From Ylistrum balloti (Eukaryota), in assembly GCF_031769215.1 (NCBI RefSeq), contig NW_026782088.1:1-64000 (forward strand): DNA of 64,000 nucleotides. Direction: 5' to 3'. The position numbers were made by a program, and so were the translations under genes. Below are positions 3,201-55,956 of the stretch, in pieces; the first letter of the stretch is position 1, and the number at the start of each line of letters is the position of its first letter. The notes beneath the pieces were generated by a model, which was given only the letters and a program-made list of their open reading frames with translations, had not been told where the DNA came from and searched no databases.

Positions 3201-3383
3201 GTCAGTGTTTATACCTGAAGACAGTCTGTGTTTTTACCTAATGACAGCCAGTGTTTATACCTAAAGACAGTCATTGCTTTTACCTAGAGACAGTCAGTGT
3301 TTTTACCTAAAAACTGTCCATGTTTTTACCACAAAATAGTCAGTGTTTATACCTGAAGAGTCTGTGTTTTTAGCTAAAGACAG
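3201..3383. repeat. Minisatellite, 23-bp unit (GTCAGTGTTTATACCTGAAGACA), about 8 copies
   Basis: Direct tandem repetition with substitutions. Confidence 0.85.
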
Positions 3384-4569: not shown

Positions 4570-5235
4570 TTGGTGTGACACTGGCCTAAACGGTTTAGTG
4601 GACTATAATTTCTATGGTTGAATATTTTAACAGGGCCTATCTATGTCACAGCTGACCTCATTTCCATGACAGGATATATTTCAGGACCTGTCTATCAGTT
4701 TGGCCTATGTTCTATGGTATGATATTATAGGGCCTAGCTATGCCATAGTGACCTGATACTTTGATAGGACATTACAGGTACTATCAGTCACTGTCATGCG
4801 GCCTAAATTCTATGGTAACAGATATGAGGACCCATATTTCACTGTGACCTAGATTCTATGGTATGAGATTTTAGGGCATATCTGTCACTGTGGCCTAGAT
4901 ACTAAGGTATGAAATTTTAGGGTCTATCTGTCACTGTGGCCTAGATTCTATGGTATGAGATTTTATCTACGTGAAAGTTGCCTTGTTTCTATAGAGGGAT
5001 ATTACAGGTCCTATCTATGTGACAGTGACCTAGTTTCCATAGAAAGATATTACAGATCCTATCTATGTGACAGTGACCTAGTTTCCATAGAAAGATATTA
5101 CAGATCCTATCTATGTGACAGTGACCTAGTTTCTACAGAGAGATATAACAAGTCCTATCTATGTGACAGTGACCTAGTATCTATAGAATGATATCACAGG
5201 TCCTATCTATGTAATAGCTGCCTAGTTTCTATATG
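4570..5235. repeat. Minisatellite array, 46-48-bp unit (GGTCCTATCTATGTGACAGTGACCTAGTTTCCATAGAAAGATATTACA), about 14 copies; diverged on the left, homogeneous on the right
   Basis: Exact 48-bp period at 5041-5136; it produces the repetitive pseudo-ORF 4955..5191. Confidence 0.9.
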
Positions 5236-6247
5236 ATTATCAGATGTATGATATTTTCTTTTCTTAAACTGAGTTTGACAATCTTTTGGCAACAGAAAAA
5301 GAAAATCACAGAATATTTTGTTTTATCTTACTAAAAGTGAGTCGGAGTCCATTTCTGTATGCAATACAGGTTAAAACCCCAATACAGGTTGCCTAATCCA
5401 GGTGATTCACAGCCCAATTAACTAAGAAATGTTTCAGGTAACCCAGGACATTGGGGATGCAACAGAAATAACTAAAAAAGTGTTATAAATCACAAAATGG
5501 CTAGCTCCTGTTATAAATAGAACATTTAACAAAAACTAGGTGTCAATCAAAACAATCTTTTTATGAAAGAAAATGCAGAAAAAATAGTGATCCCTTCACA
5601 CTGATATTCATGTTTCATAGGATTAATACCTATGAAATAAATACAACTGCATTTTAATTAAGAAGTAGATTTACACTTACTAGTGGATTTACAGTTCTTC
5701 AGCAGTCATTTAAGAAATTATTTTTTTCTATATCCATCAAAACTTAAATGTTTGACTAACAGAGAGTTCATGAATTGAACCAGACTCAAATTCAGGAATG
5801 ATTTTTTACTAATCTTACTTTAAAAGTTAAAATATAACAAATTTATTCTAAACAATTTGAATAAAACCAGGACAAGGAAAACCCAATTAATCCAATCTAA
5901 TACTTCACAAAAGAAACTTCCATCCAGGATATATTTAACTTAATTATATTTTCTTTTTTCTTCATATGTCAGTAAATATGCAAAGTAACATGCACATAAT
6001 ATATATAATATCAAAGTCTGTGTAAGTACGAAGTATTTTTTAAAAAGTAATGAAATCAATTTTTCAAATGTATCTTAGTTTTGTGATATTTGTTTTATAA
6101 AGCTTCAGGTGTATTCTTGTGATTAACTTGCTCCCATTCATAATTTAAACACCAAACTGCTGTGAAAGATATATTTTGAGGTCAGGACTTGGATCATTTA
6201 ATGTATTTAGCATACTTAAATACATAGTATGCATGGAAAATCACAGG

Positions 6248-7150
6248 GATCTAGTTCCTATAGAAAGATATTACAGGTCCAATCTGTGACAGTGGCCTGA
6301 TTTCTATGGATAGATATTACAGGTCACATCTATATGACAGTGATCTAGTTTCTATCTAGACAGAAAGAACAGGTCCTACAGATGTAACAGTGACCCAAGT
6401 TCTATCTAGACAGAAAGAACAGGTCCTACAGATGTAACAGTGACCCAAATTCTATCTGGACAGAAAGAACAGGTCCTATAGATGTAACAGTCGCGTAAAT
6501 TGTATCTATACAGAAAAAACAGGTCCTATAGATGTTACAGTGACCCAGTTTCTATCTTGACTTATAGCACAGGTCCTATAGATGAAACAGTGACCCAAAT
6601 TCTATCTTGACAGAAAAAACAGGTCCTACAGATGTAACAGTGACCCAAATTGTATCTAGACAGAAAGAACAGGTCCTATAGATGTTACAGTGACCCAAAT
6701 TCTATCTTGACAGAAAAAACAGGTCCTACAGATGTAACAGTGACCCAAATTGTATCTAGACAGAAAGTACAGGCCCTATAGATGTTACAGTGACCCAGTT
6801 TCTATCTTGACAGAAAGTACAGGCCCTATAGATGTTACAGTGACCCAGTTTCTATCTTGACAGAAAGTACAGGCCCTATAGATGTTACAGTGACCCAGTT
6901 TCTATCTTGACAGAAAGTACAGGCCCTATAGATGTTACAGTGACCCAGTTTCTATCTTGACTGATAGCACAGGTCCTATAGATGTTAGTTACCTAGTTTT
7001 CTATCTAGACAGATATTACAAGTCCAATCTATGTCACAGTGTCTTAGTTTCTATCTAGACAAATATTATATTACAGAGAGATGTTAAAATGACCTAGTTA
7101 CTACCAAGATGGATAGGTCCTCTCTAAAACAATTTAGTTTCTATGGGAAG
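6248..7150. repeat. Minisatellite array, 50-bp core unit (AGGTCCTATAGATGTTACAGTGACCCAGTTTCTATCTTGACAGAAAGTAC) with about 48-bp edge units, about 18 copies; same family as 4570-5235
   Basis: Exact 50-bp period at 6781-6950; shares AGGTCCTAT, ACAGTGACC and AGTTTCTAT blocks with the upstream array. Confidence 0.9.
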
Positions 7151-13100: not shown

Positions 13101-14004
13101 ATTTTAAGGTCATAGTATTTTCTGTAATGACATTATCATTAGAAATACCATAAAAATTTATGGATAATTTTCTTTCTCCTTCTTTTGCCCAAAGGTTTGA
13201 ATAATATAGTAATACTTTTAATTGTAACATGCACACACAAAATAAAAACATTGATCAAAATATCATTTATGAATAAAATACTGATGAGCCAATATTAAAA
13301 ACTATATACTTCAAATCACTTTGATTTCATGAATACTTTGGCAAATTTACCTCTTCAGACATAATCATGAATGTATGGTTTGGAGAACAGTAATCTAAAT
13401 CACATTTGAAATTCACTACTGATGGCCTAATGGAGACCTGGATTCTTCAAGACTCCGATATTGGTAACAGACCCAACTTGGTTGCAATCCAGAGTTATTT
13501 TCTGACAAATTTCCAAAAGGGATTTGAATTTGTGATTGACACTCCTTGCATATTAACACAAAAATGAATTACATGAAACATGAGTGATAAACAGTATATG
13601 ATGGATTGTATTTATAAAGTCTCAACAGTGATTGATCATTTGTTTTGATGAATATTCATAAGCCTGTAATTCATCAACCAGTTGTTTTATTTAAATAAAC
13701 GGCACTAAAAACAAGATTATATTAATTACCACATACTTTACAAGTAAAAAGCTATATATCTAACAGTTCACCATAGTTCCATCTTTCTGAAAATACTGAT
13801 TGTTTTATGACATCCTTACAGATAGTTCCAACCCATCAGGGGGCTACTGGTTGGCCCCTTACATCGCCAAAACCCTGACATTTGTTGGTAAAAAAAGGCC
13901 TAGAGATAGGACACGACAGAGACAGAAAAACAGTAACAAACAAACAAATGTTCACAAAATCACACTCCATTAATTCTACCAAACTATGAATATTAATATC
14001 AAAA

Positions 14005-17000
14005 ATAGTTATACAACTAGTACAATGTTTGTTCTGGTACTGCTATAAATAGCTATACCACCACAGTACAATACTTGTTATGGTACTACTATAAATAGCT
14101 TTACCACCACAGTACAATATTTGTTCTGTTACTTCTCTAAATAGCTTTATCACCACAATACAATATTTGTTCCAGTACTACTATAAATAGCTGTACCACC
14201 ACAGTACAATATTTGTTCTGGTACTACTATAAATAGTTCTGGTACTACTATAAATAGCTATACCACCACAGTACAATATTTGTTCTGGTACTACTATAAA
14301 TAGCTATACCACCACAGTACAATATTTGTTCTGGTACTACTATCAATAGCTATACCACCACAGTACAATATTTGCTATACCACCACAATACAATATTTGT
14401 TCCAGTACTACTATAAATAGCTATACAATACAATATTTGTTATAAATAGCTATACCACCACAGTACAATATTTGTTTGTACTACTATAAATAGGTACAAT
14501 ACTATACTATAAATAGCTATACCACCACAGTACAATATTTGTTCTGGTATTACTATAAATAGCTATGCTGTCACAGTACAATATGTGTTCCTGTACTGTA
14601 CTACTATCAATAGCTATACCACCACAGTACTATATTTGTTCTGGTATTACTATAAATAGCTATACCACCACAATACAATATTTGTTCTGGTACAACTATA
14701 AATAGCTATACCACCACAATACAATATTTGTTCCAGTACTACTATAAATAGCTATACCACCACAATATAATATTTGTTCTCGTACTACTATAAATATAAA
14801 TACCACCACATTACAATATTTGTTCCAGTACTACTATAAATAGCTATACCACCACATTACAATATTTGTTCTGGTATTACTATAAATAGCCATACCACCA
14901 CAATACAATATTTGTTCCAGTACTGCAATAAATAGCTATACCACCACAGTACAATATTTCTTCTGGTATTACTATAAATAGCTATACCACCACAATACAA
15001 TATTTTTTCCAGTACTACTATAAATAGCTATACTGTCACAGCACAATATTTGTTCTGGTATTACTATCAATAGCCATACCACCACAGTACAATATTTGTT
15101 CCAGTACTACTATAAATAGCTATACCATCACAGTACAATATTGTACCAGTACTACTATAAATAGCTATACCACCACAATACAATGTTTGTTCTGGTGTTA
15201 CTATAAATAGCTATACCACCACAATACAATATTTGTTCTGGTACTACTATAAATAGCTATACCACCACAATACAATATTTGTTCCAGTACTACTATAAAT
15301 AGCTATATCACCACAATATAATATTTGTTCTCGTACTACTATCAATATAAATACCACCACATTACAATATTTGTTCCAGTACTACTATCAATAGCTATAC
15401 CACCACATTACAATATTTGTTCTGGTATTACTATAAATAGCCATACCACCACAATACAATATTTGTTCCAGTACTGCTATAAATAGCTATACCACCACAT
15501 TACAATATTTGTTCCAGTACTACTATAAATAGCTATACCACCACAGTACAATATTTGTTCTGGTATTACTATAAATAGCCATACCACCACAATACAATAT
15601 TTGTTCCAGTACTACTATAAATAGCTATACCACCACAATACAATGTTTGTTCTGGTGTTACTATAAATAGCTATACCACCACAATACAATATTTGTTCTG
15701 GTATTACTATAAATAGCTTTACCACCAAAGTACAATATTTGTTCCAGTACTTCTATAAATAGCTATACCACCACAGTACAATATTGTACCAGTACTACTA
15801 TAAATAGCTATACTGTCACAGTACAATATTTGTTCTTGTACTACTATAAATAGCTATACCAACACATTACAATATTTGTTCCAGTATTACTATAAATAGC
15901 TATACCACCACAGTACAATATTTTGTTCTGGTACTACTATAAATAGCTATACCACCACAGTATAATATTTGTTCTGGTATTACTATAAATAGCTATGCTG
16001 TCACAGTACAATATGTGTTCCTGTACTGTACTACTATCAATAGCTATACCACCACAGTACTATATTTGTTCTGGTATTACTATAAATAGCTATACCACCA
16101 CAATACAATATTTGTTCTGGTATTACTATAAATAGCCATACCACCACAATACAATATTTGTTCCAGTACTACTATAAATAGCTATACTGTCACAGTACAA
16201 TATTTGTTCTGGTATTACTATAAATAGCCATACCACCACAGTACAATATTTGTTCCAGTACTACTATAAATAGCTATACCATCACAGTACAATATTGTAC
16301 CAGTACTACTATAAATAGCTATACCACCACAATACAATGTTTGTTCTGGTGTTACTATAAATAGCTATACCACCACAATACAATATTTGTTCTGATTCTT
16401 CTATAAATTGCTATACCACCCCATTACAATATTTGTTCCAGTACTACTATAAATAGCTATACCACCACAGTACAATATTTGTTCCAGTACTACTATAAAT
16501 AGCTATACCACCACAATACAATATTTGTTCCAGTACTACTATAAATAGCTATACCACCACAGTACAATATTTGTTCTGGTACTACTATAAATAGCTATAC
16601 CACCACAGTACAATATTTGTTCTGGTACTACTATCAATAGCTATACCACCACAATACAATATTTGTTCCAGTACTACTATAAATAGCTGTACCACCACAG
16701 TACTATATTTGTTCTGGTATTACTATAAATAGCTATACCACCACAATACAATATTTGTTCCAGTACTACTATATATAGCTATACCACCACAGTACAATAT
16801 TTGTTCTGGTATTACTATAAATAGCCATACCACCACAATACAATATTTGTTCCAGTACTACTATAAATAGCTATACCATCACAGTACAATATTGTACCAG
16901 TACTACTATAAATAGCTATACCACCACAATACAATGTTTGTTCTGGTGTTACTATAAATAGCTATACCACCACAATACAATGTTACACTACTATAAATAG

Positions 17001-18230
17001 CTATACCACCACAATACAATATTTGTTCTGATTCTTCTATAAATTGCTATACCACCCCATTACAATATTTGTTCCAGTACTACTATAAATAGCTATACCA
17101 CCACAGTACAATATTTGTTCCAGTACTACTATAAATAGCTATACCAACACATTACAATATTTGTTCCAGTAGTACTATAAATAGCTATACCACCACAATA
17201 CAATATTTGTTCTGGTACTACTATAAATAGCTATACCACCATAGTACAATATTTGTTCTGGTACTACTATAAATAGCTTTACCACCACAGTACAATATTT
17301 GTTCCAGTACTACTATAAATAGCTATACCACCACAGTACAATATTGTACCAGTACTACTATAAATAGCTATACCACCACAATACAATGTTTGTTCTGGTG
17401 TTACTATAAATAGCTATACCACCACAGTACAATATTGTACCAGTACTACTATAAATAGCTATACCACCACAATACAATATTTGTTCTGGTACTACTATAA
17501 ATAGCTATACCACCCCAGTACAATATTTGTTCTGGTACTACTAGCAATAGCTTTACCACCACAGTACAATATTTGTTCTGGTACTACTATAAATAGCTAT
17601 ACCACCACAGTACAATATTTGTTCTGGTATTACTATAAATAGCTATGCTGTCACAGTACAATATGTGTTCCTGTACTGTACTACTATCAATAGCTATACC
17701 ACCACAATACAATATTTGTTCTGGTACTACTATAAATAGCTATACCACCACAGTACAATATGTGTTCCTGTATTACTATAAATAGCTATACCACCACAAT
17801 ACAATATTTGTTCCAGTATTACTATAAATAGCTGTACCACCACAGTACAATATTTGTTTTGGTACTACTATAAATAGCTATACCACCACAATACAATATT
17901 TGTTCCAGTACTACTATAAATAGCTATACTGTCACAGTACAATATTTGTTCTGGTATTACTATAAATAGCTATACCACCACAATACAATGTTACACTACT
18001 ATCAATAGCTATACCACCACAGTACTATATTTGTTCTGGTATTACTATAAATAGCTATACCACCACAATACAATATTTGTTCTGATTCTTCTATAAACAG
18101 CTATACCACCCCAGTACAATATTTGTTCCAGTACTACTATACATAGCTATACCACCACAGTACAATATTTGTTCCAGTACTACTATAAATAGCTATACCA
18201 CCACAGTACAATATTTGTTCCAATACTACT
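14005..18230. repeat. Large satellite array, 46-bp unit (TACTACTATAAATAGCTATACCACCACAGTACAATATTTGTTCTGG), about 90 copies
   Basis: 46-bp period verified at 16501/16547; no unique spacers between units. Confidence 0.97.
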
Positions 18231-21200
18231 TTAACTTCCAAGCATAAATCACATGTTATAGTATGAAAAACATGTTTTGATAATACCTTTATAAGCAACA
18301 ATCCTAAAGTTATGTTGCTTTATTAGTACATGTATATACATCTGTAGAAATACATGTCACTGATCAGATTAACCTTAACAGCATCAACAACAAATTGTCC
18401 TATAACACTCAAAATTTCATTGCAATAATTTATTGATCAGCTATGGTCAGATTGATTTGCTGAAAAAAATCAGTGTGAGAAAAAGTAAGCAATCATTATT
18501 TTTTTTCTTCTTCAATATTTCCAGGTCAACAGTAAAATCTGGATACCAATGGTAAATAATCAGTCATTAGTTTATGGTAAATTCCACTCCTACAATGATA
18601 AAATTACAAAAGAAATATCATGAACCCTGAGAATATTTATCCCATCTAATTTGTTACTTACATCTCCAAGAATCATAGATAATTATGACCAGTTTCATTC
18701 CAAGCTATGCTTAAAAGCCAAGAAGATGAAATGGTGTTCCCATTTTAGACTAAAAATACCTCAAACAATAAAAGATTTTTTTCATGTATGTTGTCTTCTA
18801 CAAACTATGTATAAAAGGAGTGCCAAACTACAGCTATTTGCCCTTGGTTTTTTCTCTTATCTACATAAAGTAAGTCTCTTAAAAAAAGTCTGTCTGTTTG
18901 CCGACATGAGTAATAAAGCAAGGGCAAAGGTTATCAAAATATTCCAGCATAAAAGATAATATTACAGTCCTCCTATCTAAAAATTTGTTGTTTTTTTTTT
19001 AATCAAACTCATCAGTCTACAGTTTAACTGTATAAAACTGATGGAAACTTTCATTTACAAAAAAAAACATCATTTATACTTTGACATAATGTTCATATCT
19101 TTATAGTTCCTGTTTCTTTGGCCACATGTGTTTCACTTTTTTCTCCAAAAGAAGATTATGAGTTTGGCAGTATCGCCTTTTGAGACCACCCCTCAGTGAA
19201 ACAAAGGAATGTTAGCATGGCAAAGGCCTTTGAAAACACACCTGATTACAGCAGACTTGTAATATTGATTCCTTACAGTAGAAAACTAGGACTGAACCAC
19301 ATGCTAAGGCAGGGAACCAGAGTAAACTATAGGTATTTAGGCTGTGAGCACTTGTCAGACAATCATTGTAAGGTCAAGAATTTGTGCTGAAAATTAAGAG
19401 TCAATGAGAATTTGTAACTTTGCTTCATACACTATAATAGAAAAGTGTTTTCGTCATGTAACTTAAATCACATTCCAAATACATGTCCCTATGTCAATGT
19501 GAAGAAAGCTTCCATAAAACTGCTGCACAAGTTTCTGAAGACCAATGTTGATTTTGTGAAATCTTAAGACTTATTTTTGGCAGAAAATTGAATTGCATGG
19601 TCAATGGGAATATTTCTTCTTTGTTTTACCTATGCAGACCTGTGTCTAACATAAAAGTATGAACATACATCATACAAATTCTATTTCATCTTTATGTAAT
19701 CAAGATATATTGCTATATTGACAGTACAACTGCTTTCCCATGATATAAATTTACCATAATAGCAACGCTTATGATATACTGGAAAAGATCATATAACCTG
19801 GATATATCTTAAGAACATAAATGTGGTTCAGTCAAATATTTATAAAAAATATATTAAATTTTAGAATAATTATTGACATGGAGATGATTAATATAGGCTC
19901 TGCATGTAACTTTATACATCAGTATTTATCTTTACACAACACGGGTGAACTGGACTGCAATATTGTTCAATTGAATTAATATATTTTTATCTTACTAAAA
20001 GTTAATCATGCAGATGTACAAAATATAACACAAACATTTCATCAAGAAATTATGTTTTCTATGTAACCATATGTATTACAAACTCCTCCAAAAAATTTAG
20101 TTTAACATTCCTTATGGACAATGAAGCCAGAAATATTGACAAAAACTGTCATTTTCTTGAAATTTGAGGTGATAATAGAAGAAGCTGTACGAGTTGAAAT
20201 TTAAAGATTTTATTTCACAAAAATGCAACAACTGCATACACATTGTCTTTTATTGTAGCCAAAGTTAATGCTAAATAAATTATATCATAAAAGTGATTTT
20301 TTAACATCTAATCTCACAAATATCATTTTTAAGCAATCCACATGTATATTTGTAATAAACAAATTTCTAACCATGCAAAAGGATTCAAATATGATATTTT
20401 GTCATTGTTTCAGACTTGAGTTAACTCTAAGAAACTGACTACAGACAACATCAGCTACAAGTTTTTTTATCATTATCAATTTTGGAAAATCATACATTTT
20501 TCTTGCATTTTTTTCTCAATGAAATAAATATAAGGTTTTACAGTCAAATAAAAGTTATATTTTTCACTTATCAAATCACAGTATTTGCAATGAAAATATT
20601 AATCCCCCCCACCCGAGTACATTGCTGTACCTATATATATATATATATATTGTGAAAATATAGCAATACATTGGGCTTATATGACGTTTGATAAGAGTTA
20701 CATGTGTCATACATATTTCAATTATTTGAAGACTTATGTCTTGGATACCACTGTACAGCAGAAAATTGATAACATGTAGTCAGAGGGACATATTCAAACT
20801 AACATCAAAGAAAGGTGAGAAAATGCAATGCATAGAATGTTCCTTGTTTCCTGATGAATAACAGTGATATTTCATCTTGTGAAATGGAATCTCGAATATT
20901 TTTCAGTCATGTGAAAGTTTCTACCCTACTGGATGAAAAGTAAGTCGTATTCATCCAGGAATAAAGATTAGCCTCTTTCATATTTTTTGCCGTGTCCTAT
21001 CAATTTCATATTCAGGAGTAATTGACTAAATTGTCTCTATGCAGAAAACAAAAATCATTAAAAAATCAAAATGATAATATATGTTTTCAGGGAATAGTTC
21101 CTAATATTTGAGTCATTGCAAATAACATAAAACATTAAGGTTTTTAAAAAATCAATGATGATGCTGTTAAAATATATCAAACAACATCAGTATTGATCAG

Positions 21201-25790: not shown

Positions 25791-28585
25791 GGATCATATG
25801 TTTGATATGAAAAAAAAACAAAAGAGAGAGTGAAAAAAACTATGTCAACTAAAAAATAAATAAAAACAACGTTGGGATCTACATCATAACAAAAAAAAAA
25901 AAACAGGTCTTTCAAACTATCTTCAAACTTCCAGAATATTCAAAACACCATACCAATAAGAAATGCAACCCAACCAAAAAGTGACTAAAGGTTTGATTGA
26001 CTAAGGACATGTGTTTTACTTAGGTGTCTGTAGTGGTAGAATTCTTTTATTTACTAAAGAAAAACAAAACAAAATACTGACTTCCAAATTATTACACTTA
26101 CAGAAGTTCCCCGTTTTTTGAAGAATAACTTTGAATTATGTGATTATATAGCCAAACATTTTAAGTGGGAATTTGTTACTTTTCTCTTTTATTTTTATAT
26201 AAATCAGTTGATACATAATAGCCTTGCCCCAATATCTCATCTACAATTAGCTAGGCAACAGGTAAGATTCCTCAACATTGGGGGTCATCTCAAAAGGGTT
26301 TCATGCCTTCTTCTGAAGCAGTCTCTAGAGATTATAAACAGTTCTTCAAAAGGATCATTTACTATGATCCACTGAAAGGCTGTAACAGTGGACCTAAAAC
26401 CAGTTAGATAAAAGAAAGTAATGAGATCATTTCACATTCTCCACTTGTCGGGTAAAAGAACAATTGAGATATTAACATGAATTTCAGTATCGCCCTCAGC
26501 CCAATGTTTTTGTTTTGTTTTTATTACAAAATTAAACTGTACTATGGAATACTTTCCTTCTTTCCCAATTCAAAAGTAAGAACCAGTGTCATATCATTAT
26601 CAATTTCATATCTGAAGATATTGTATCATAATTTGGGTCTTTGCACTTTGCAGTCTAACTCCTACAAGCAAATTATTATTATTTTTGTAACTCAGTTGAT
26701 GCAAATCTTTAGTCTATTGAAAGAGCAACGAACCCAGGATTTCAAGTACCAGTTATATAACCAGGACAAAGTTCAGCTGCAATAACCTTGCAGTCTCTGT
26801 ATAGGCAATGCATCTGATCATCACACTTAATGTATCATCTTAATATATTACCGGAACCTCTGAAGAGGTGAAAGCGCTAGGAAACTCCTTTCTATTTGCT
26901 TGTTTATTTTATGTAAATTTGTTATTTAATGTCCCCTTTTTTGTATTTCTTTTATCAAACTCTGTTCCAAATTACAAATTAGACATAAAAATTAACCATA
27001 TTTTCATTAAGACCTTTATTTTTGAACATCAAAATTACATATATTATTTTCATCACCTTCAAGTTCTCAATTAAAATGTCTCAATTAATATTAATCAATA
27101 ACTTATATGTATTACTGAACTGCTTAATTTTTACACCACATTTTAAAATCATAATAAATTATAATTATAATCAAATATAAAATTGTGCATGTTAAGAGTG
27201 TAATTATATATTAATGAAAAGCCAAACGATATTGCAATACAAGAATGGTGTACCTTCACGAACTCACTGATCAAAGCTAATCCATACTGCAATACTTTCA
27301 CAAAACTAGTCCAAACAATCAGTGAAATGTTTTGGTGGTTTCATAGAATAAAAATAGAAGTGTTAACCCCTTCTTTTGTTTGATAATTGATGAAATACTA
27401 AAGTTTAGTGAATATATAAAAATCACCCTTGGTTCAAAAAGAAAACAAAAGGGCTGGTTTACAACTAAACATATCCTTGTAGATATATGTAGTTTTTCCA
27501 TAATTGGCAATATGAGTTGCTTGTTGCAACCTTTCAGACACAGTATACATTCATATATGAGGTGCAATCTATTTTAAAAATTAACCCCCCCCCCCCCCCT
27601 TTAAATTTGGAAAATGATTGTTAATTCATTGATAACAGTTTCTCTATAAACTTTACAACATCCACCATTTGTTTGCTCTTATGCTCTTTTTTGTGTTTAT
27701 GAGTCGTTAAGAATAAGTTACTCCTTTTTAAAACAAAATATTTTGGAATTCTTAAGTGAAAAATTCAGGCTATCAGCTTCATCAACAGAAGCTCTCTTAA
27801 ACAAATCTCTTATCAACATCACTGGTAAGTCTGAAACTGCCTTTCAGCCCTCCAGCAGATAATGTGAAATAAGATGCTGATATATGTAGCATATATATTT
27901 GCAAATAAAACTATTATCAAAATACATGTATACAATTTATGGGTGAAAACATACTTTACTTTTAATTATTACCAAATTGCAAATTTGCAATTTAAATCTG
28001 TAATCTGTTGCTCAAACATTCCTATTCTAGTAGAAAATGTAAACAGAAAAATCCTTGAAAGAGCTAACTATAATCTGATGAATAAAGTTTTCACGAGATC
28101 CGTTGCTTTGTGTTGATTGTAATCTCGATATGGAACCCTAAGTAGGTGAAATACACACACTGACTAGGATTGTCCGAAACTCCAATGAACTTGGGACGAG
28201 CCACACCTTCTTTAGTTTGCCCTCTTCGACCATGCACCAAACAGCTTAAGTTTTCTTTTAACAGTCGATGCCAAAATCATTAGCTATAGTGAAAACATCA
28301 CCAAGCGACGAAACATATGAAAAATCAAACACAAACAAATATTACAAAGACCCGTCATACTGGAACATGGTCCATACCGTAAGTGCCCGGTCGTGTCAGT
28401 CACACAAAAAACCCAATGCCTGCGAACACATGACCTGGTACAGTAGTAGTATACAGGCACACATGTTTGAAGGCATAACTTGCACATTATAACTGAATGT
28501 ATGCTAAAAATGCACGATACGTTTATTCAAGTTTACTGTTATACAAACAACACACTCTTAACATAAAATGTACTTGTACACTTAC

Positions 28586-28741
28586 CGAGACATCGGGGTT
28601 ACTGGTATCTTTACCAGTAACTGCTCGTACAACTCCACTCCGCCATTCCCAATCGACAATTTTGTTAAGTTTTAACTTCCCAGAACACCGCACAGAGAGA
28701 AATCTTTTCCCAACTATTTCCTCTCTACTCTTATACGCCAT
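28586..28741 (-). CDS. KDM3/JMJD1C: First coding exon (52 codons) of a KDM3/JMJD1C-family JmjC histone H3K9 demethylase; the rest of the gene lies beyond the left edge
   Basis: Translates to MAYKSREEIVGKRFLSVRCSGKLKLNKIVDWEWRSGVVRAVTGKDTSNPDVS, matching the recalled human JMJD1C N-terminus (MAVETRAELVGKRFLCV...WRAGVIRAVSHRDSRNPDLA). Good Kozak context (GCAATGG). A phase-0 donor TCG|GTAAGT sits at the position equivalent to the JMJD1C first intron. Confidence 0.9.
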
Positions 28742-29411
28742 TGCTTCACAATGTATCCATTTTTGTTGTTTCACATCACTCCAAATATTAGGAAACTTTT
28801 AACAAAATTCCTATGTCTCCTTTCTCCAGAGTACTGCGCATGAATACATAACACAAAGTTTGACATTTGGGGTCATAAGGTCATGAGTTATAAACAAATA
28901 TCCTCAAGATAAAATAGTGCGACGAAAAATGAATCCTTATTCCATACAAGATGACAAAAACAATAAAGAATGAATTACAAGATCACGATCAAAGTACCTA
29001 CCGATGTTTCCTACAGAATAAAACAAGATAATCATACGGAAAAACAAAAGTAAAATAGAATGAATTTTGTTCCAGTTTCAAAAAGATGACAAGACACTTT
29101 CGGATAATATTGACTCCTTGTAAAAGACTTTAAATTATTAATTATGCACTTATATTTTAGACAAATATTATACTAACCAAACAACGAACAGCATTTTATA
29201 TTGAAATTGACCGATAGGTTATTTTTAGGATGTGGTAAGCTAATGTTTACATTGTTGTTTCGATATACAGATTGGGAGTTGTTTCCCCTAGCGATCACCT
29301 GCTCAGAGGGCGCTTTGAACAGAAAGACATTGCTTACTAGGATTGATTTCGAATTTCACCTATCGTGATGTTTTATTTCAACGTTTATTCATAGGTGTTA
29401 CTCAAGAAGCA
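28742..29411. promoter_or_regulatory. Putative bidirectional promoter and 5' leaders between the divergent KDM3 and REEP start codons (670 bp)
   Basis: Divergent ATGs at 28741 (-) and 29412/29415 (+). CpG is visibly retained here compared with the flanking introns. NRF1-like TGCGCATG at 28835-28842. Transcription start sites cannot be placed from sequence. Confidence 0.7.
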
Positions 29412-29446
29412 ATGATGGTGTCCGCCATTTTATCAAGATTTGTCAT
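29412..29446 (+). CDS. REEP: REEP coding exon 1 ([12 protein letters not shown])
   Basis: Matches vertebrate MVSWIISRLVV; donor AT|GTGAGT, phase 2. Confidence 0.9.
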
Positions 29447-32400
29447 GTGAGTATATGAAGTGTATAAACGACCCCATCGGTCGCGGCAGTTATCGAAGGC
29501 AGGGTACAAAAGTTGTGTAAGTTTCGGATGAAATAGGGACAACTTGTGAGAATGATAAATCATAAATATGAAAGTAAAAGCAACATTTTTGAATAATCAA
29601 TCATATGACTAATTAATTAGACTTTCAAGGCCTGCTATTATCCGTGGACAAATTACAGGTACATGTTTATGTTTTCTGAAATGATGAATATACCAAAGAA
29701 CATACACACGTCGTACAAATAACCCCCCCTCTCTCTCCTTTGTATGAACTAACTGGACCAAATTGTCCATACAAAACTATTTGATATTGATGATAGATAT
29801 TGATATATATATATATATATATACATATCATATACATGGATATCAGAAAGCAGATGCAGATAGCAGCTGAAGGAACCTTGACCTGCTTCCAACATCGTGT
29901 AACTAGGGAATTTCAGGAAAGATTTTCCAGCTATGGCACAAGTATGAAGCTAATATCATCCAGTCATATACCTGAGTGTCATTACAAAGATGGAACATCA
30001 CTTTATAGAGATGGGAATCAGTTTCACTTTACTTCCTTCATCTCTTATAGAAAACACAAAATCAATACATTTTTTTATTATTTGTTTTCTAAATTTAGTA
30101 CAACTTTGCACTTTTATAGAAAATGAACACAGGGAGTAGTATCATCAGGTATACCATCTGCCATTTTGATTTGTCTGTATTTTTTTATACCTTGGAAACT
30201 ACTTGTCACATTGGTTATGTACACACATTACGTAAACAGCCAGTGAAACAGTGTTTTAAAGGTGAACAGTTCATCACTAGGTTGGCTATTTTTGTTGGCA
30301 TTGCCCAATGAAAACGATCTTAAGAACATATTTTATTGAAGTTACAGAGATACACACTATATATATCAACTGCACTATGATGCCCTAGTATGGAGCTTGT
30401 ATTGGACAGTAATGGATGAAAAAATTTTGGTAAACCTTCAGACAGTTCAAACAAAAATAAATATAGTCAAACTTCAGTGTTCGAAGTTCAAGGGACTACC
30501 AAAAAAACTTTGATACTTCGAGACTTCAAATCATTCATGGTGGGTTATATAGACTTTTTCATGTTCATGGCTATAGTTAATGAAACAATATTTCTACCTT
30601 AAAAAACACAACAAATACCAAAACACAAGTTTAAAGCCCCAATATACGTAACATGCACCAAAAATTTAGTGTAAAATCACACATAATTATTGAGATATTT
30701 CTCTAAGATGTAGTTAGAATTAAGTTATTCAAACAATAGTTACCATGACTTTGTGCATAAAGTATTAATATATGAGCAGTTGAAACTCGATATTTGTAAA
30801 CACACACACATTTTAAACACGCCGCCATCGAAATTACGATTGTTGCCGAACCACGTCGGAAAGTTCATGACCTGATCTCCGGAGAGTTGAGGTTTCTACT
30901 TATAGAGGAAGCATATGCAGATATGTCTACGGTAAGATTTTGTTTACAAACTTTGTTTGCGAAGTCTTGTTGTAGACTTGAGGTATTCCTGTGATAAACA
31001 TTCAGTTCTTAGGAAATTATTAGAAGGAATAATTAGTTTAGAAACGATACGGTGCACAATTATAACGTAAAAATTCAGAACTGGCCTGATGTATGATTGG
31101 AAAAAAAGGAAGCGACTGGTGGACGTCTGCACTGTGCATGCGCAATGTATGAATTATTGTGGGTCCCACATTGTTTATTTTCCGATTTTTTCAATTTTTA
31201 TTGAAATTGAAAACAGTTTTATTTTCTTTAATTAAAGGAAAGTATTTGTTTTGTTACATATATTACGGGGAAAATAAGATAAAGTTTTTTTTTTATAGTG
31301 ATTTTTACGTATATTGGGGCTTTAAATGAAAAGATACATTTTTATCTTAAGACAGACATTTTCATTCATGGAAAAAAAACCATATGATTCAATAGAAATC
31401 AATTAGAAATTGATAATGCATGCTTACCTTTACATGCCTGCCTTCATGTCACACAGTATATATATTTTACACATCAATTTTAAATGAAATGACACGCAGC
31501 ATTAAAGTGGTCTTCAAGTGTTATAGTAATTATTTTAAGACTGCTACATAAGTGTTATAGGCACTAATGAGTTTTAAAGAAAGCAAATTAATAACATAAT
31601 GTATTCTGTCCAGAAACGACAGCACTAATAAGACACATCTTCAGTCATAGAAATTACAAGAGTGTTTGCCAATATTCTGACAACAGCTAGTCTGAATCAT
31701 TAAGAGAATGCATGATTGACGAATAAATCAATATATTTCTCATATTTTAATACTTAAAACAAAAAAGAGACACATTGTATCATAAAAATGATTTCCTTAA
31801 CCTCAAAACACAGAGCCAATGACAGCAAGCTCCCATTGTCAGACAACACTCTTTGTTGAAATGTGTGAAATTTTTGGCACAGGCGAAAATACCTGTACAG
31901 TACAGGTCAATGTTTTGTTTGAATGATGAAGTGTCATTGACTGTGTTGTCATATAGCTTTCGGTCTGTGAAAAAACATTGATACATAAAAAAGTTCTATT
32001 TATAAAACTTCATAAAGGAGTAAGTTGATAGTAATATATAGGAATAGAATTCAGAACTGGCAAAAAACTTCAATAAATTGAGATGTTTTGAATCATCAAA
32101 GTTTGATTATAGAAGTTTCACTGTTTGAATTATACAGAGTTATGCTTGTGAAAGTAAATTAGAGTTCAGACTATTATTGTCAACATTGTCCAAAACCAAG
32201 AATAATTATTTGAAAGAGTCATAGGCAAGGCAGGAAACTACAGGTCAGTAATGGCATTTTCATAAAAAAAAGTTGATTGTGAAATGATTATCTTTTGAAA
32301 CACTGTACTGTAATACATGCATTTTAACTGACTGTTAAGAAATCACAAGTTTTGTTCTTCATCATGTTGAAATTGGCTACGAAGAAATTATGTTAGATTA

Positions 32401-35400: not shown

Positions 35401-38400
35401 TTAATCATTTTGTTTGCTTTCAATTTATCCAAGCCTATCTAGGCAATCATTACAAACAGTCCTAGAAAGCATATGTGGGTGGTCTAGATATGATGATCTA
35501 TAGGACCTCTGTGTCATCAGATTGGTCTATGGGCAATAGATATGAGTCAACAGAAGCCAAGTATGTGAAGTTTGATGAAAGTATCCAGTAAAACTTGGTG
35601 GTAAAATCAGATATGGCATTGTGGACATTTGATTTAATGACAAGCATGTTGGCAATGATGGTCAGTGATGGGTAATCATTTAGGTTCATCTGATGTGGTC
35701 AGTTGAAATTTTTCATAGTCACTCATTGGTACCTTAATATTGTCTCGGGATTTAGCAAAAACATGATTCAGATGATACATAATCAAGATTAATATTCATT
35801 CTTATGTTATTTCTAGATAAGTGGGGTGTTTTACATTAAATTCACAAAAATAAAATATTATGTAATCCATTAACTACACCGAAAGTCTATCTGATTTTTA
35901 ATTGATAATCGTTTATAGCCCGTTACTAGTCATTTTACACATTACTGGTCAGCCTGATCTACATATAATCCTTGTATTGACAACGTTGTGATATATAACC
36001 CTGATGTTAACCCCCAGATAATTAAACTATTTTACCAACATCTTTTCATTCTCTACATATTTAGATTTCATTCTCAATCTTAAATATATGAATCTACAAC
36101 TTCAGGGACGAAGGCAGCCATAGATAAGTTGTTTTTTCCACTGATTTTTTTGGCTCAGGACATTTGAGTCCTGGACTCATGATTTTCCTTTGGGATTTCC
36201 TCAAATTTTAGGACCTACTTTATCTCTTAGTAGTGGGACTCCTCATGGAAGTCTTGGAATTGGTGCTCTGGTCTCGCCTGAAACAATCCTTGAAAATTTT
36301 TTAATCTTCTACCAGAATTCAGCATTCATTTTCGACAGTGCAACAGCATCGTTGTAACATCAGACCAATACCTTTAAGGTATTTGAAAGTTAAAAGCAGG
36401 ATATAGGTGTAGAAAGATAAAAACAAAAACTTTTCTCAAATAAATGTTGGAACTTCTTTGAAGTGTACATATTGAAAATTAACATTCAGAATTCAAGTTA
36501 TTGAATCCTTTGAATTACAAGGATGGTTTATAAATAATACATCATATACAGAGGCTAGATAAAAAATCTTTCTGCTTAATTCCATGAGAAGTATTTTCTT
36601 CTTATGTATAAAATGTTCATTCTTGTTTTTATTTTTCCCTTTCTTCTGTATTTTTGATCATTGATAAATTTTAGATATTTAAACTGTGAGCTCTGTGTAA
36701 TGGTCCCTATTACAATTACAATACTGAGCTCATTCTTGGGGACATGTGTAATGGTCCCTGTCACTATTATAAAACTCATTCTTGGGGACATGTGTAATGG
36801 TCCCTGTTAGCTACAATCCTGAGCTCATTCTTGGGGACATGTGTAATGGTCCCTGTTAGTTACAATCCTGAGCTCATTCTTGGGGACATGTGTAATGGTC
36901 CCTGTTAGCTACAATCCTGAGCTCATTCTTGGGGACATGTGTAATGGTCCCTGTTAGCTACAATCCTGAGCTCATTCTTGGGGACATGTGTAATGGTCCC
37001 TGTTAGCTACAATCCTGAGCTCATTCTTGGGGACATGTGTAATGGTCCCTGTTAGCTACAATCCTGAGCTCATTCTTGGGGACATGTGTAATGGTCCCTG
37101 TTACAATTACAACCCTGAGCTCATTCTGAGGGATATATAATCAATGCTTGTTTCAATAACACATTGTTTTGTTTCTCTGTTCCGTTCTTTTTATATAATC
37201 TACAGAAACAAACAAAAACTCTCTCTTAAGTTTAGATGGACACACCTCAATGACCAATGTTAAGTGTAAAAATTACTGCATATGAGTATTCAAGCATGAA
37301 GACGCAGAACTTCCGGGTGCACCTTTTCCAGATTAACAGTGCATTTCAATATTTTCCCTCCAAAGGGGAATAACTCTTAGAAGTTGGCATTGAGAAAGTT
37401 AACAATTTTATGTACATATACTGGGTACTTCGATAAGATAGACAAAATCAAAGCACCTAATGTTATATTGTATTTTGAAACCTGAGTTCAAAATGTATGG
37501 AGAAATAAAGATGAAAAGCCACATGTCCAAATTGATAAACTTCATTTTTCATTGTACAATCAGTGCTAGAACATGTATAGTTTTCTGTTAGCAAACTCCG
37601 TGCACAGCTGAAACCCGAGTTAGGTAGACTGAGAACATACCTGACTGGTCTCACACAACTTACTTATCAGTTCCCATATTACCATCATGTAGAGAGATGG
37701 TAAAAATATTGTTTCCATGGCAATGTTTGATGTGGGCTGTGCTCATTTTCAGAGCTGCAATTGTAAATAATGGTATGATAGAATACATAGAGGTAGGTGG
37801 GTGAGTGAAAGTTGGTATCTCCCACACATTTCCAGTGTCTTTGTTTACTATAGACAACTGGTGTTCCCAGTTTCAATGGGGTAATCAACATAATGTTATG
37901 AGCCCCTGCCAAGTTGTTAGAAAGTGCAGCTGGAATAATTTGGCTGAGGTTTGATGCTTGGGATACAAGTTGAAGAGGTGGCTGGTTTCATCATTGGTAA
38001 TTCTGTAGAACATATGACCCAGGGGTTCTACCAAACTTCTACTACACATGCTGTGCTGATCTTGATTTTCGAAATGTGTGGATTTAAACTCTTGGCTCAG
38101 TATGACTTGGTTGTAGAAGAGATGGATTGAACAGTGTTTGGATTTGCTTAGACATCTTTAGAATGGCAACCACTGACTCAAACTTTGATCAAAGTTTCTT
38201 CTTACTTCTGACGTGATTTTACAAATACTGATCTGTCTGGCAGGATTTGTCACAACAAAGTTGCATTGTGAATTATGAACTGGAAATTGGAGATGATTGA
38301 AAGGACAAGATTATATATAGTTACTAAATAGCAGAATATAGGTCAAACAAACATGGACTTTGAAACTGTTTTACAGTAATAAGTAGGTCAAACAAACATG

Positions 38401-41400
38401 GACTGGTAAAGTTATAGTAGAAAGTAGGTCAAACAAACATGGACTGGTAAAGTAATGATAGAAATTAGGTCAAACAAACATGGATGTGAAACAGAATTTC
38501 TGTGGACTGAGAAGTATGGCAGTATTTCACAGCTGAGTCAATAGGACAATTGTGTAATAATCCAGAATGTTTTGCTCCAGTTACCTGAGGAATGTAACCG
38601 TTTAAGATGTGTACACAGTAATATGGACCATGAGCCACAGTCACATATCATCCTTAGTTTGCCTAGTATATATACATGTATTATATATGTACTGTTCTTT
38701 ACCGAAGTTCATGAATCTGTATATCATCATCACAGAGGTGTTGTAGAACTTGCAAAATCTTACTTCCACATTGTAAATAGGATTATTAATATGTTTCATT
38801 TTAAGGATATTTATACAGTGTGTAAACAGCAATGGATATATTTAATTACTTGAGTAATTATACAGTGCCATTAGAGGTAATTAACGTATCACGTCACAAG
38901 GTAGGATCAGACAGCACCTAAAAAGTCTGTTTTGTGATTTCGTGTTCAAAAATGTATGGATACATACAGGAGAAACCAGTGATACAAACCAATGGATTTA
39001 TCACTTTATAACAGGATGTCTGGGTTTGACTTATGAATGGTAAAGCCATCAAGTCATGTTTGGTCTGGGGAGATCTGTGGAAACATGTTGACGTCACTTT
39101 ACACATCAGCGGTGTCTGTGTTAAAACAAGCTATCTATGAAATCCTCAGTCAAACAAGTCCCTACCTTTATACTATTTGTAGATTGGTGTGTGGGACACT
39201 GTATCCAGCCTACGCCTCTTACAAGGCCATCCGCACAAAAAATGTTAAGGAATATGTGAGTATTTACCTCATCATTACTCAAAAGAGTGTTTCACAGTGA
39301 TAGATTGTAATACTGTTAGATAAAAAAATTGTCAAGACTTATTACTCAAAATAGTGTGCTACGGTAATAGATTGTAAGATGGTCAGATAAAAATTGTCGA
39401 GACATATTACACAAAATAGAGTGTCATAGTAATAGACCGTAATACTGTAAGTAAAAGAATTGTTAACTTATTCAAAATACCCGGTAATGTGTCACAGTAA
39501 TAGACTTTAATACAGTCAGATAAAGAAAATATTGCCAAGAAGTAAGTTCCTGATATAAACAAAGATTTTCAGAGCTGATGATGAACATACGAGATATTTA
39601 TGTCTGCTGACGAAATGGATCAGTTATTAGAAAAATAAGTACCATTTCCAAATTTCTTGTTTTTCAGGTAAAATGGATGATGTACTGGATTGTATTTGCC
39701 ATTTTCTTGTCAGTGGAGACATTTTCCGATGTGCTTCTATCATGGTATGTATTCAAAGATCTTGTATTTGACGCCTTGATTTTTTTTGTGTTTTCACTGA
39801 AATTTTAACAAACGGTCTTGGGCTGACTTAATTTTGGATTTATTTAAGTATCAATAGTGTCATCAGCATTATTTCACTTGAAGCATGCAATACCTCTCAT
39901 GTACCTGTTGATTTCTATCAAATTTGTCTGATTAACATATAAAGAAACCGGTTACCATCCGTTCTGGATCACCAATGTTTTCTTTCATGAATTTTAAGAC
40001 AATGGGGTCAGATAGGTCTTAGAAGAAGGGCTTATCACATGCATAGGTTTGATGTGTACTTTGTGTTATTCTGTTTTTTATCTAATTACATTTTTTTCAG
40101 GCTTCCATTTTATTACGAGATAAAGATGGTATTTGTGATTTGGATGTTGTCTCCTATTACCAAAGGGTCCAGTTATCTTTACAAGAAGTTTGTACATCCA
40201 CATTTGGTAAAGAGAGAAAAGGTAAGAATTTCCGTACACTCATTGAGGTTACATGTCTCACAGCTACACTCAGATTGGTAGATGACATTAATTTGGTTAC
40301 CAAAGTTATTTCTGTACACTCATGGAATTTAAATGTCTCACAGCTACACACAGTATGGTAGATGACATTATTAGGTTTCCAAAGTCATTTCAGTGGGGTT
40401 ATGTGTCCCAACTCATCACAGACATGACATGAAGCAAGCATTTCTGACAAACTTAAATTTTTGCCGGTCTTCCTCCTCCTGTTTTAAGACTTAAGAACAA
40501 CATGGTTTTGTTTTTCAGGAAATAGATGAATACATATCCCAGGCAACAAAGCAGGGCTACTCTACTTTAATGAACCTGGGTCAAAGAGGCCTTACCTATG
40601 CCACTAATGTGGTGGTGAAAACAGCTATAAAGGTAGGTATAGTGGAACTATACAGGTAATGTACAGGTAGATGGTCAAGTCAAGACCAAAACATTTATAC
40701 AGGTAGAATGGTCATGAAATGTCAAGACCAAAACATTTATACAGTCTGATGGTCATGAAATGTTAAGGCTAAAACATTTATACAGGTAGATGGTCATGAA
40801 TTTTGTGTTGTGTTGTATAAACAGTGTAGTACATATTACATGTTCATTTCTTTCAATCTCGGGGGTAAAAATGTAAACAATTTTCTTTTTTAAACTAACT
40901 ACCAAAGAACAGAAAAAAAGGAAAATATTGAAGCCAACTTGGATTATGAATTCTGGTTAATTACTTTAATATGGTGCACAAACCAGGTACTAAACTTAGA
41001 TGATGAACTACAGTAATGAAGCTTGAATTAGTAGGAAACAATTGACCTATTTTTGTGGTGATAACAATGATTTACCATTCCTTTTTTTCGTTTTTCTAAA
41101 GGGGCAGTCTACCCTTGTAGAACATGTACGTAAGAGTTATAGCACCAACGATCTAAGAGTTCCCGACGACTCTCAGAACGCTGCTGGAAATCTGATGGAT
41201 AGTGACGAGGAATTCGGTGAGTGAAGCCTTAAAGTTTGTATGGCTCTCACTCAAGCATTCATAATGACAGAGAAAATACATTTATACATAATAGAGGGCC
41301 ATTACAGAATGATATAAACATTGGCAGTGGGATATACAACATTTGTAGTAACAGTGTTTTCAGTTTTAGACAGTAGAATTGCTTTGAAGCATGTATATAT

Positions 41401-44400
41401 GACAACACAGTGTGTCTTAAGATTTTGATTGAATATCATTTGACTTACTGATCATTCCTCAGCTTTTGACAGATTTAATCTTGGTTTGAAAGATAATAGG
41501 CTGTCTCACTGGCATATCATTCTATCATATGATTGCTTTGTTGTTTAGTAAATATACTCATGTGATATTTTTACATCTTACATACGTAATATAGCTTATT
41601 GTGACGTCATCTTAGATAATGGGAAAACACGCAGCTGTGTGGCGTAACAATGATGAACATAGATATTGAGCAGACATGACTTTGTTTGACATATAAATGT
41701 CAGTTTCTGCCATATTTGCCATTTTATTGCTCATTTACTTAAAAGGAAATTAAATTTGTTTCCATTTCATATGTGATTTATGAAACTAATCACAAATCTC
41801 TCATTTGAGCTTGTCTAAAAAATAAAAAACAAATTTACCTATCAGCCTGAAACTTATGTAATACAGGACCTGGTGTATATTATCATATGTTTGTTTGGAC
41901 TAATTTACTTGCAAGTTGCATTTGAAAGTACAACATTAATCTCACATATATGTTATTAGTAGTTTAGATCATATCTAACATTCCAATTTTTTTTTTTTTT
42001 GTTTGATTTAGATATACAAGATGAGAACATTAACGGTAATAGTTTAACACTGCGGCCATACCTCAGTTGGTTTACTCATCTCGCATGCTACCTCACAGCC
42101 CTAATTCTGTACTAAAACTGCTTTCTTTAAAAATAGGTTATTACATACATTTTATGTGAATTTGTTTATTTTGATCTTTTAATAATGAATAAGAACCCTT
42201 ATTAACATTGTTTAAAATCCCATCACCATAATAGTATACGTTTATCTGTAACAAGTTTCACTGCTGCTAACATTATACAGAACTACTAGTAGGAAAAAAG
42301 AGGAAGTAAATAGGCTGATAGGATACATATACAGTGTTCAATTTCTGATAGAGGTAATCACCAATCACAAACATCTATCAGATATTTACCGTAGGTTCTG
42401 AAATGTTAAAAAAATGCTCATCACTACCATTTATCATTTAATCCGATGTTTGCCTGAAGTGCTGTGTCACTTCCTTCTGTACCAATAAACAAGTATTGAA
42501 GTTGAGAGTCATTGTTTCAGGTCATAGCCATCTGATATATTAACAATATTTACAATCTTGTAAATTCAGAAAAAAATTGATTAGCAAATCTATCAAAATT
42601 TGCATGTATACTGAAGACATGTTTTATAATAACATAGAAGAGCTTTTGTCAGAGGTCAGTAAAAAGTACTGGTAGAGATTTATCAAGATCCAGTATACTT
42701 TTGGTTCATTATTTCATTTTTGCAGTGCCCTTGTCAACATGTTTTTATCAGATTTTAATAATAAAGGCCCTTTTCTGTGTATCCTAAACCCTTTCTATCC
42801 CCTGGAATCATACAACTTGGTCCTACAACAATGCATGATGACTCCCATCCTGGTTAATGGCTCATTCCGTTTTGATACCCGGGTTTGTAGAAACTGGTTC
42901 TTAATTCTTAAAAATGAGATAGGGATTGAATAATTAAACAAAGAATGATTATCTCTAGGAATATAGTTTAGTGGTTATGTTGACCTAACACAATTTCTGT
43001 TTTTAGAACTTGGAAGTTGAGTGTATTCCACTCTATTGTATTACAAGTGAATCATAGAAACAAGAAATCTGTTTCACTTACAAAGTTTTATTGAAAACAT
43101 ATCCAAACTTCTACCATCTTCCCTTTCATCTTTTGCCTTATAATTCATTACACCTGTTGGCGTTATGGTTATAGAGGAACGACTTTCTCAAGATAACAGA
43201 GAGATAGAGAGGAGGAAAGAGAAGAGAAAATTACACAGAAGTACGAGTGATGTCACAGATAGCCGGTCTGTTAGACCACAGAAAGCTTCAGGTACTAAGT
43301 CCTCTAAACTATCAATGATTCTGAATGATATCTCTCCCTGTAAATTTTGACAGGTTTAAATGTATCACTCCCTGTAAACTTTGATAAGTTTAAATTTATC
43401 ACTCCCTGTAAACTGTGCCAGGTTTGCATGTATCATTACCTGTATACTATGACAGGTTTACATGTATCACTTCCTGTAAACTTTGATCGGTTTAGATGTA
43501 TCACTCCCTGTAAATCTTGACAGGTTTACATGTATCACTTCCTGTAAATTTTGACAGGTTTAGATGTATCACTCCCTGTAAACTTTGATAGGTTTAAATG
43601 TATCACTCCCTGTAAACTTTGATAGGTTTACATGTATCACTCCCTGTATACTATGACAGATTTACAGGTATCACTCCCTGTAAATCTTGACAGGTTTACA
43701 TGTATCACTCCCTGTAAACTTTGATCGGTTTAAATGTGTCACTCACTGTAAACTTTGATAGGTGTAAATGTATCACTCACTGTAAACTTTGATAGGTTTA
43801 CATGTATCACTCCCTGTGAACTTTGATAGGTTTACATGTATCACTCCCTATAAACTTTGATCGGTTTAAATGTATCACTCCCTGTAAATCTTGACAGGTT
43901 TACATATATCACTCCCTGTAAATCTTGACAGGTTTAAATGTATCACTCCCTGTAAACTTTGATAGGTTTACATGTATCACTCCCTGTAAACTTTGATAGG
44001 TTTACATGTATCACTCCCTGTAAACTTTGATAGGTTTAAATGTATTACTCCCTGTAAATCTTGACAGGTTTACATGTATCACTCCCTGTAAACTTTGATC
44101 AGTTTGAATGTATCACTCCCTGTAAATCTTGACAGGTTTACATGTATCACTTCCTGTAAATCTTGACAGGTTTAAATGTATCACTCCCTGTAAACTTTGT
44201 AAACTGTGCCAGGTTTGCATGTATCATTACCTGTATTTGACAGATTTAATGTATCACTCCCTGTAAACAGGTTTACATGTATCACTCCCTGTAAAATTTG
44301 ATAGGTTTAAATGTATCACTCACTGTAAACTTTGATAGGTTTAAATGTATCACTCTGTAAACTTTGATAGGTTTACATGTAAACTTTGATAGGTTTACAT

Positions 44401-55778: not shown

Positions 55779-55797
55779 AACCTGACAACAAGCTAGC

Positions 55798-55956
55798 ATG
55801 GCACTGGTATGGCTGCAGCAAACTTGGAATGCTAACCGTGTAGTAATTTCGGTGGCAACCAGTGTAGCCACAGCGGCTATCGCTTACAGCATATACAAAG
55901 TTATCTTCAACGTAAAGGAGGAAGAGGCAGACGAATATTTTGAGACAATTGTCCTT
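55798..55956 (+). CDS. ARL9/ARL10: ARL exon 1 (53 aa, includes predicted TM helix VVISVATSVATAAIAYSIYKVIF)
   Basis: Kozak AGCATGG; donor CTT|GTAAGT, phase 0. Confidence 0.88.

Follow-up and report, generated by a model that had tools for sequence, protein, structure and literature searches.

Why should two unrelated genes, one a histone-demethylase gene of the KDM3/JMJD1 family and the other an ER-shaping gene of the REEP1-4 type, lie head to head with less than a kilobase between their start codons, and how old is this arrangement? The question is raised by a 64-kb stretch of DNA (the window), with which contig C231 opens. The KDM3 ATG is at 28741 on the minus strand and the REEP ATG at 29412 on the plus strand, with 670 bp between them (28742–29411). 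A preliminary description of the locus had reported these divergent start codons and the 670-bp gap, and the coordinates are exact. It had also proposed that the locus is an invertebrate counterpart of a vertebrate gene pair, that the pair was inherited from the bilaterian ancestor, and that it has been held together by a co-regulatory constraint. The closest protein matches are consistent with a mollusc as the source of the DNA. Coordinates of the features are collected in Table 1.

Table 1. Features of the KDM3-REEP locus, in window coordinates
Feature	Position	Strand	Length or extent	Details
KDM3 intron 1, window part	1–28585	−		whole intron approximately 47.3 kb, extends onto contig C1052
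KDM3/JMJD1 coding exon 1	28586–28741	−	52 codons	DUF7030 N-terminal domain; phase-0 donor GTAAGT
KDM3 5′ UTR	28742–28861	−	minimum extent	contigs of four runs reach 28836, 28838 and 28861 from 28584
Transcript-free stretch between 5′ ends	28862–29310	.	at most 449 bp	candidate shared promoter core
CpG non-depleted island	27900–29900	.		single island over both first exons and the spacer
REEP 5′ UTR	29311–29411	+	minimum extent	contigs 29324–29446, one with 13 extra letters that match 29311–29323
REEP coding exon 1	29412–29446	+	35 or 32 nt	from ATG 29412 or 29415; M(M)VSAILSRFV, then GTGAGT
REEP exon 2	39183–39255	+	73 nt	AG/GT boundaries and frame; teleost REEP with the same boundaries
REEP exon 3	39668–39744	+	77 nt	gene model; Pfam TB2_DP1_HVA22, 28.7 bits
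REEP exon 4	40101–40221	+	121 nt	gene model; Pfam TB2_DP1_HVA22, 46.8 bits
REEP exon 5	40519–40632	+	114 nt	gene model; aligns with Capitella and Conger REEP
REEP exon 6	41102–41224	+		gene model; aligns with Capitella; region aligning with vertebrate 14-3-3 ‘lynchpin’ site

Identity of the minus-strand exon

The minus-strand frame opens at 28741; this is its first ATG, as a stop codon precedes it in frame at about 28799. The exon closes at TCG/GTAAGT, with the donor at 28585–28580. Over its first 51 codons it matches profile positions 1–44 of DUF7030 (PF22989) with a score of 64.6 bits, the cut-off being 27. When these 51 codons were searched against 1.84 billion representative proteins, 167 matches were obtained at E ≤ 0.001, the majority of which are exon-sized open-frame calls that run through the exon 1 splice site. 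Six longer matches were scanned with Pfam, and KDM3 domains are present in five. P0011 (2589 aa) and P0108 (2289 aa) have the complete architecture of DUF7030, PWWP_KDM3B, Tudor_KDM3B and JmjC; N-terminal KDM3 domains are found in P0118, P0084 and P0052. P0053 was rejected as a KDM3 relative, as the scan reveals an unrelated cadherin. Intron 1 is in phase 0 after codon 52, both in the window and at six loci from other species, and this confirms the phase given in the preliminary description.

No KDM3 exon beyond exon 1 was found in the 64-kb window by tblastn with five KDM3 homologues, full-length P0011 among them, because the gene runs off the start of C231. The continuation is on contig C1052. 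Positions 1–6477 of the window are the reverse complement of C1052:12819–6363, with 99.4% identity, and this overlap is flanked at both ends by tandem-repeat arrays. Therefore C231 and C1052 represent one locus left unjoined by the assembler. The first part of C1052 (1–6362) has no counterpart in the window.

A genome-wide family search shows only one other DUF7030 piece, on the plus strand of C1052 at 31507–31557, which covers profile positions 44–60; exon 2 begins at C1052:31513 by tblastn with P0011. The genome's only Tudor_KDM3B matches are also on C1052, at 53553–53666 (54.5 bits) and 70757–70843 (37.2 bits). A PWWP region on the same contig matches residues 53–145 of P0011, by tblastn alone. 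In the zinc-finger region (C1052:140196–140486), every cysteine that aligns with P0011 is retained, as is the histidine, the alignment being judged by eye. JmjC (PF02373), one of the genome's JmjC matches, scores 50.6 bits at C1052:150140–150346. The iron ligands HxD...H are retained, as HLD and a later H in the alignment with P0011, and the corresponding tblastn region extends over approximately 148.6–150.5 kb of the contig.

Transcripts tie these parts to the window. In four public runs, transcript contigs pass from 28584–28861 into exon 2 letters at C1052:31515. The transcripts are from a related organism and were traced through exon 2; at the join between exons 1 and 2 they agree at 27 of 30 letters and encode the same amino acids. 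From the contig overlap and the transcript join together, it follows that intron 1 is approximately 47.3 kb long and that the KDM3 gene spans approximately 166 kb. The minus-strand exon is part of the genome's single KDM3 orthologue, whose DUF7030, PWWP-like, Tudor_KDM3B, zinc-finger and JmjC parts are linked by transcripts and by the contig overlap; the orthology proposed in the preliminary description is upheld. A practical correction is that the assembly divides KDM3 between two overlapping contigs.

The REEP gene

All exons of the six-exon plus-strand model have AG/GT boundaries. REEP transcript contigs go on from 29446 into exon 2 at 39183, with 29 of 30 letters in agreement. For each gene of the pair, the first exon (28586–28741 and 29412–29446) and its donor are thus borne out by spliced transcripts. 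If CDS numbering starts at the second ATG, the coding sequence is interrupted by introns after nucleotides 32, 105, 182, 303 and 417, in exact agreement with the positions first listed for this gene. Exons 3 and 4 pass the threshold for TB2_DP1_HVA22 (PF03134).

Two adjacent ATG codons open the REEP frame. Transcript contigs of the related organism have T>A at 29413, a change by which the first ATG is lost, as well as A>C at 29411; with the first ATG lost, the conserved start would be 29415. The second ATG is probably the true REEP start. The peptide read from it agrees with exon 1 of Pomacea and Capitella (MVSAIISRVV).

REEP proteins fall into REEP1-4 and REEP5/6 types, and the preliminary description had placed this gene with the former. 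The domain begins at the extreme N-terminus (MVSxxxSRxV) and is not preceded by the additional segment that REEP5/6 proteins have there. The genome's only other TB2_DP1_HVA22 locus is on contig C93 and has REEP5/6-like exons. Upstream, this paralogue has a segment in the style of REEP5/6, and it also has a KAIES motif; which motifs mark a subfamily is judged here by the human proteins. Introns after CDS nucleotides 32, 105, 182 and 303 are identical in position and phase in a Conger conger REEP gene that lies beside a KDM3-family gene. Some exons are fused in other species, exons 4 and 5 in Capitella and exons 3 and 4 in Papilio. The N-terminus and introns, together with the separate REEP5/6-type gene on C93, bear out the earlier assignment, and by its predicted protein and exon structure the plus-strand gene is the genome's single REEP1-4-type gene.

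REEP1-4 proteins have a 14-3-3 ‘lynchpin’ serine in the C-terminal region, which REEP5/6 proteins do not have (Tinti et al. 2012, PMC3411107). In an alignment, VRKSYSTND of exon 6 stands opposite RLRSFSMQ of human REEP4, and one serine appears to correspond. There are two options for the 3′ end of exon 6: the reading frame may run to a stop at 41222, or the exon may be spliced at 41216, where a GTGAGT donor is found. A basic- and serine-rich open frame without a Pfam match is found 3′ of exon 6, at 43144–43347 on the plus strand. If splicing does occur at 41216, this frame could be one more exon for the C-terminus of REEP.

The same layout in other genomes

Loci from other genomes were fetched with 10-kb flanks by way of the KDM3 N-terminal matches among the representative proteins; P0052, P0145 and P0066 were left out of the comparison, being either on contigs that are too short or a transcript. 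At all loci with adequate flank, REEP is upstream of the KDM3 ATG and on the opposite strand. The distance from the REEP start to the KDM3 ATG is 682 bp in Pomacea canaliculata (GCA_003073045.1), 869 bp in Papilio xuthus (GCA_001298345.1) and 2202 bp in Capitella teleta (GCA_000328365.1). It is 1598 bp in Conger conger (GCA_029692045.1), where the canonical REEP exon 1 reads MVSWIISRAVV, and 2020 bp in an insect-like assembly (GCA_030347285.1), where an unannotated exon with a donor reads MISSIVSRLV. In the paddlefish Polyodon spathula (GCA_017654505.1) a TB2_DP1_HVA22 gene on the opposite strand starts approximately 9.8 kb upstream, beside a divergent KDM3 paralogue. Apart from the insect-like assembly, the species names, like that of the whale shark, follow papers in which the accessions are cited. 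The REEP exon-1 motif followed by GT in the right phase occurs exactly once per 10-kb upstream flank, and the chance rate of the motif with a donor is at most 3e-4 (3000 shuffles per locus). The record of a whale shark JMJD1C-like gene lists no neighbour within 10 kb upstream; it comes without DNA and is uninformative.

The public annotation calls for correction in three of these genomes, where the true REEP first exon is missing. In Papilio xuthus this exon (MISSIISRLV, at L029:9131 on the minus strand) is unannotated, with exons 2–4 further along the same strand, and the public model begins elsewhere. The Conger conger REEP model opens at another exon, 543 bp from the KDM3 ATG, and the true exon is at L020:8402 (minus strand). 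For GCA_030347285.1 there is no REEP model in the public annotation; the true first exon is at L022:7980 (minus strand).

That the adjacency would extend beyond one species was part of the original proposal, and the head-to-head layout does recur, in one gastropod and one annelid as well as in two insects and in two fishes. Adjacency and orientation are kept, among the loci fetched, in Mollusca, Annelida, Arthropoda and Vertebrata. Independent convergence on this layout was considered and ruled out: exon structure, orientation and position are common to the loci. Since the layout is common to spiralians, insects and fishes, the pair dates to at least the protostome-deuterostome ancestor. The proposed inheritance from the bilaterian ancestor is thus supported by the recurrence of the layout in protostomes and fishes. 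The spacing between species ranges from 0.7 to approximately 10 kb, and therefore a strictly shared promoter is not universal.

Relation to the published record

The linkage of the two families is already in print. Human REEP1-4 are in four paralogons that also contain KDM3A, KDM3B, JMJD1C, HR and EGR1-3, and amphioxus pro-orthologues of both families have been named (Tinti et al. 2012, PMC3411107, Fig. 4 for the paralogons). The human linkage of KDM3-family and REEP genes given in the preliminary description agrees with the literature at the level of this published paralogon. The window and the vertebrate paralogon have the same two gene families linked, but the window has one unduplicated pair with a 670-bp spacer. 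Tinti et al. use the linkage as evidence for whole-genome duplication, and do not deal with orientation, spacing, a shared promoter or protostomes (PMC3411107). In the teleost Conger conger, the canonical REEP exon 1 is 1.6 kb upstream of the KDM3-family ATG and on the opposite strand.

A catalogue of microsyntenic blocks also contains the pair. Block 631, classed as ‘Bilateria novel’ and dated to the bilaterian ancestor, joins the JMJD1C/KDM3B and REEP orthogroups (Robert et al. 2022, PMC8851819, Additional file 4). It has neighbouring gene ids in Mizuhopecten yessoensis (T17174, T17175) and in Lingula anatina (g12807, g12808) and is also entered for Acanthaster planci; the brachiopod and echinoderm cases of KDM3-REEP linkage are taken from this catalogue alone (PMC8851819). 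It should be pointed out that block 631 is an entry in a catalogue whose blocks hold three genes or more, and that this entry carries no orientation or distance and no insect among the rows consulted (PMC8851819). The block as entered includes a SWIB-domain neighbour, present in the scallop and in Lingula; none was found beside KDM3 here, on C1052.

Conserved ancestral microsyntenic pairs are mainly 5′-5′; their spacers are short and their co-expression is raised (Irimia et al. 2012, PMC3514665). KDM3-REEP resembles this 5′-5′ class in having unrelated divergent genes, a short spacer and an orientation that is kept across phyla. For HSPD1-HSPE1, a pair of this class, a bidirectional promoter has been demonstrated, and the two genes are co-expressed and have a function in common; KDM3-REEP differs in being known here from sequence and transcripts. 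A literature search found no paper on the KDM3-REEP orientation, on a promoter common to the pair or on a JMJD1C-REEP3 bidirectional promoter. The pair belongs to a well-described class and not to a new one; the linkage itself is not new and raises no new question. What is added here is how the pair is oriented, its sub-kilobase spacing and its occurrence in insects.

The spacer and its CpG island

The 5′ limits in Table 1 derive from assembled transcript contigs and so are not exact start sites. The CpG observed/expected ratio of the island is 0.8–1.1, compared with 0.31 for the window as a whole and with a median of 0.21 and a 90th percentile of 0.66 for 700-bp windows. No Rfam match was found in the 26–32 kb region of the window. 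Run X8 has a KDM3 contig without a REEP contig, which does not show that REEP is absent there.

A k-mer and motif scan showed no element common to all six spacers. The perfect CRE palindrome TGACGTCA is present in four of the six KDM3-REEP spacers, from different phyla (L019:9436, L023:7910, L022:8131 and L020:9498). In Pomacea, Capitella and the insect-like GCA_030347285.1 it precedes the REEP ATG by 112–151 bp, in Conger it is elsewhere in the spacer, and it is absent from the window and Papilio spacers. Approximately 0.03 copies would be expected per spacer, a rough estimate and not a shuffle test. The palindrome may be regarded as a lead and not as a universal element. On the unlikely reading that one shared promoter couples the two genes, the copies upstream of REEP in the snail, the worm and the insect-like genome could be remnants of an ancestral shared element.

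A second CpG-non-depleted patch is located within REEP intron 1 at 30600–31500 (observed/expected approximately 1.1). Short contigs of run X8 with odd joints pile up at 30630–30877. A repeat could account for this patch, as could a transcribed element that is not annotated.

Why the pair persists

The locus is a clean and compact divergent pair of two unrelated genes, of bilaterian age, and what is to be explained is its persistence. We favour, at a probability of roughly 0.85, the view that KDM3-REEP is a conserved ancestral 5′-5′ microsyntenic pair that has persisted as its spacer is nearly all promoter, and that the two genes probably share regulatory input. A single KDM3/JMJD1 gene and a single REEP1-4-type gene, both of them expressed, are transcribed divergently from one compact CpG-non-depleted island, their presumed promoter. 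If the spacer is almost wholly promoter, a breakpoint within it would harm one or both genes and would be selected against; the layout would then have persisted because of the promoter content of the spacer. The uncharacterised co-regulatory constraint suggested in the preliminary description can be put forward as a hypothesis. The pair is of added note in that vertebrates have retained the linkage in all four duplicated copies, and it may offer a test case for telling apart two reasons why such pairs survive, shared promoters or merely a small target for breakpoints.

Active coupling of the two genes and passive retention appear roughly comparable in standing, and a bystander constraint ranks lower. 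Under passive retention, an ancestral pair survives only because a 0.7–2 kb spacer presents a tiny target for breakpoints and rearrangement is slow, with the genes themselves uncoupled. This is a possible, if doubtful, account of the locus. The spacer is short in most species, no motif is common to all spacers, and most bilaterian blocks are kept in lophotrochozoans anyway (Robert et al. 2022, PMC8851819). Yet the pair persists in insects and vertebrates despite the loss of 50% and 84% of bilaterian blocks, respectively (PMC8851819), and none of the four vertebrate paralogons has lost the linkage (Tinti et al. 2012, PMC3411107). The raised co-expression of conserved 5′-5′ pairs as a class also speaks against uncoupled genes (Irimia et al. 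2012, PMC3514665).

The strongest form of coupling is unlikely, namely that one shared promoter couples the genes and has been under selection for more than 500 million years, through both vertebrate duplications, with four ohnologue pairs still linked. If true, such coupling would imply a link in dosage or timing between H3K9 demethylation and ER shaping.

A regulatory block is slightly less probable again. Here the enhancers of one gene would reside in the long first intron of the other, which is a bystander, and the two promoters would act independently. The mechanism has been described for many conserved pairs (Irimia et al. 2012, PMC3514665) and both first introns are long (approximately 47 kb in KDM3 and 9.7 kb in REEP); in the paddlefish the linkage is intact with a spacing of up to approximately 10 kb. 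Against this, KDM3 and REEP are not developmental regulators of the typical kind that has enhancer deserts, and the shortest spacers favour promoter sharing. There is next to no likelihood that the exon on the minus strand is a fragment, stray or duplicated, and the adjacency an assembly artefact at a contig end: the window does open at a contig end with a single KDM3 exon inside, and C1052:1–6362 is unmatched there, but this exon is the genome's only N-terminal DUF7030 match, transcripts of four runs join it to exon 2, C231 and C1052 overlap by 6.5 kb, and six other genomes have the same layout.

Other features of the window

Minisatellite-like tandem arrays with repeated open-frame peptides are found at 6400–6950, 14000–18300, 36650–37140, 43340–45000, 57300–57530 and 62800–64000. 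The 14–18 kb array is within KDM3 intron 1 and has a GC skew of approximately −0.4.

An Arf-family small GTPase gene is present on the plus strand at 55786–58600, with two exons that match Pfam Arf at 33.5 and 56.6 bits. A possible upstream exon of this gene (55786–56118) has a hydrophobic opening stretch and no Pfam match. The Arf gene has its own non-depleted CpG island, at approximately 54.6–56.2 kb.
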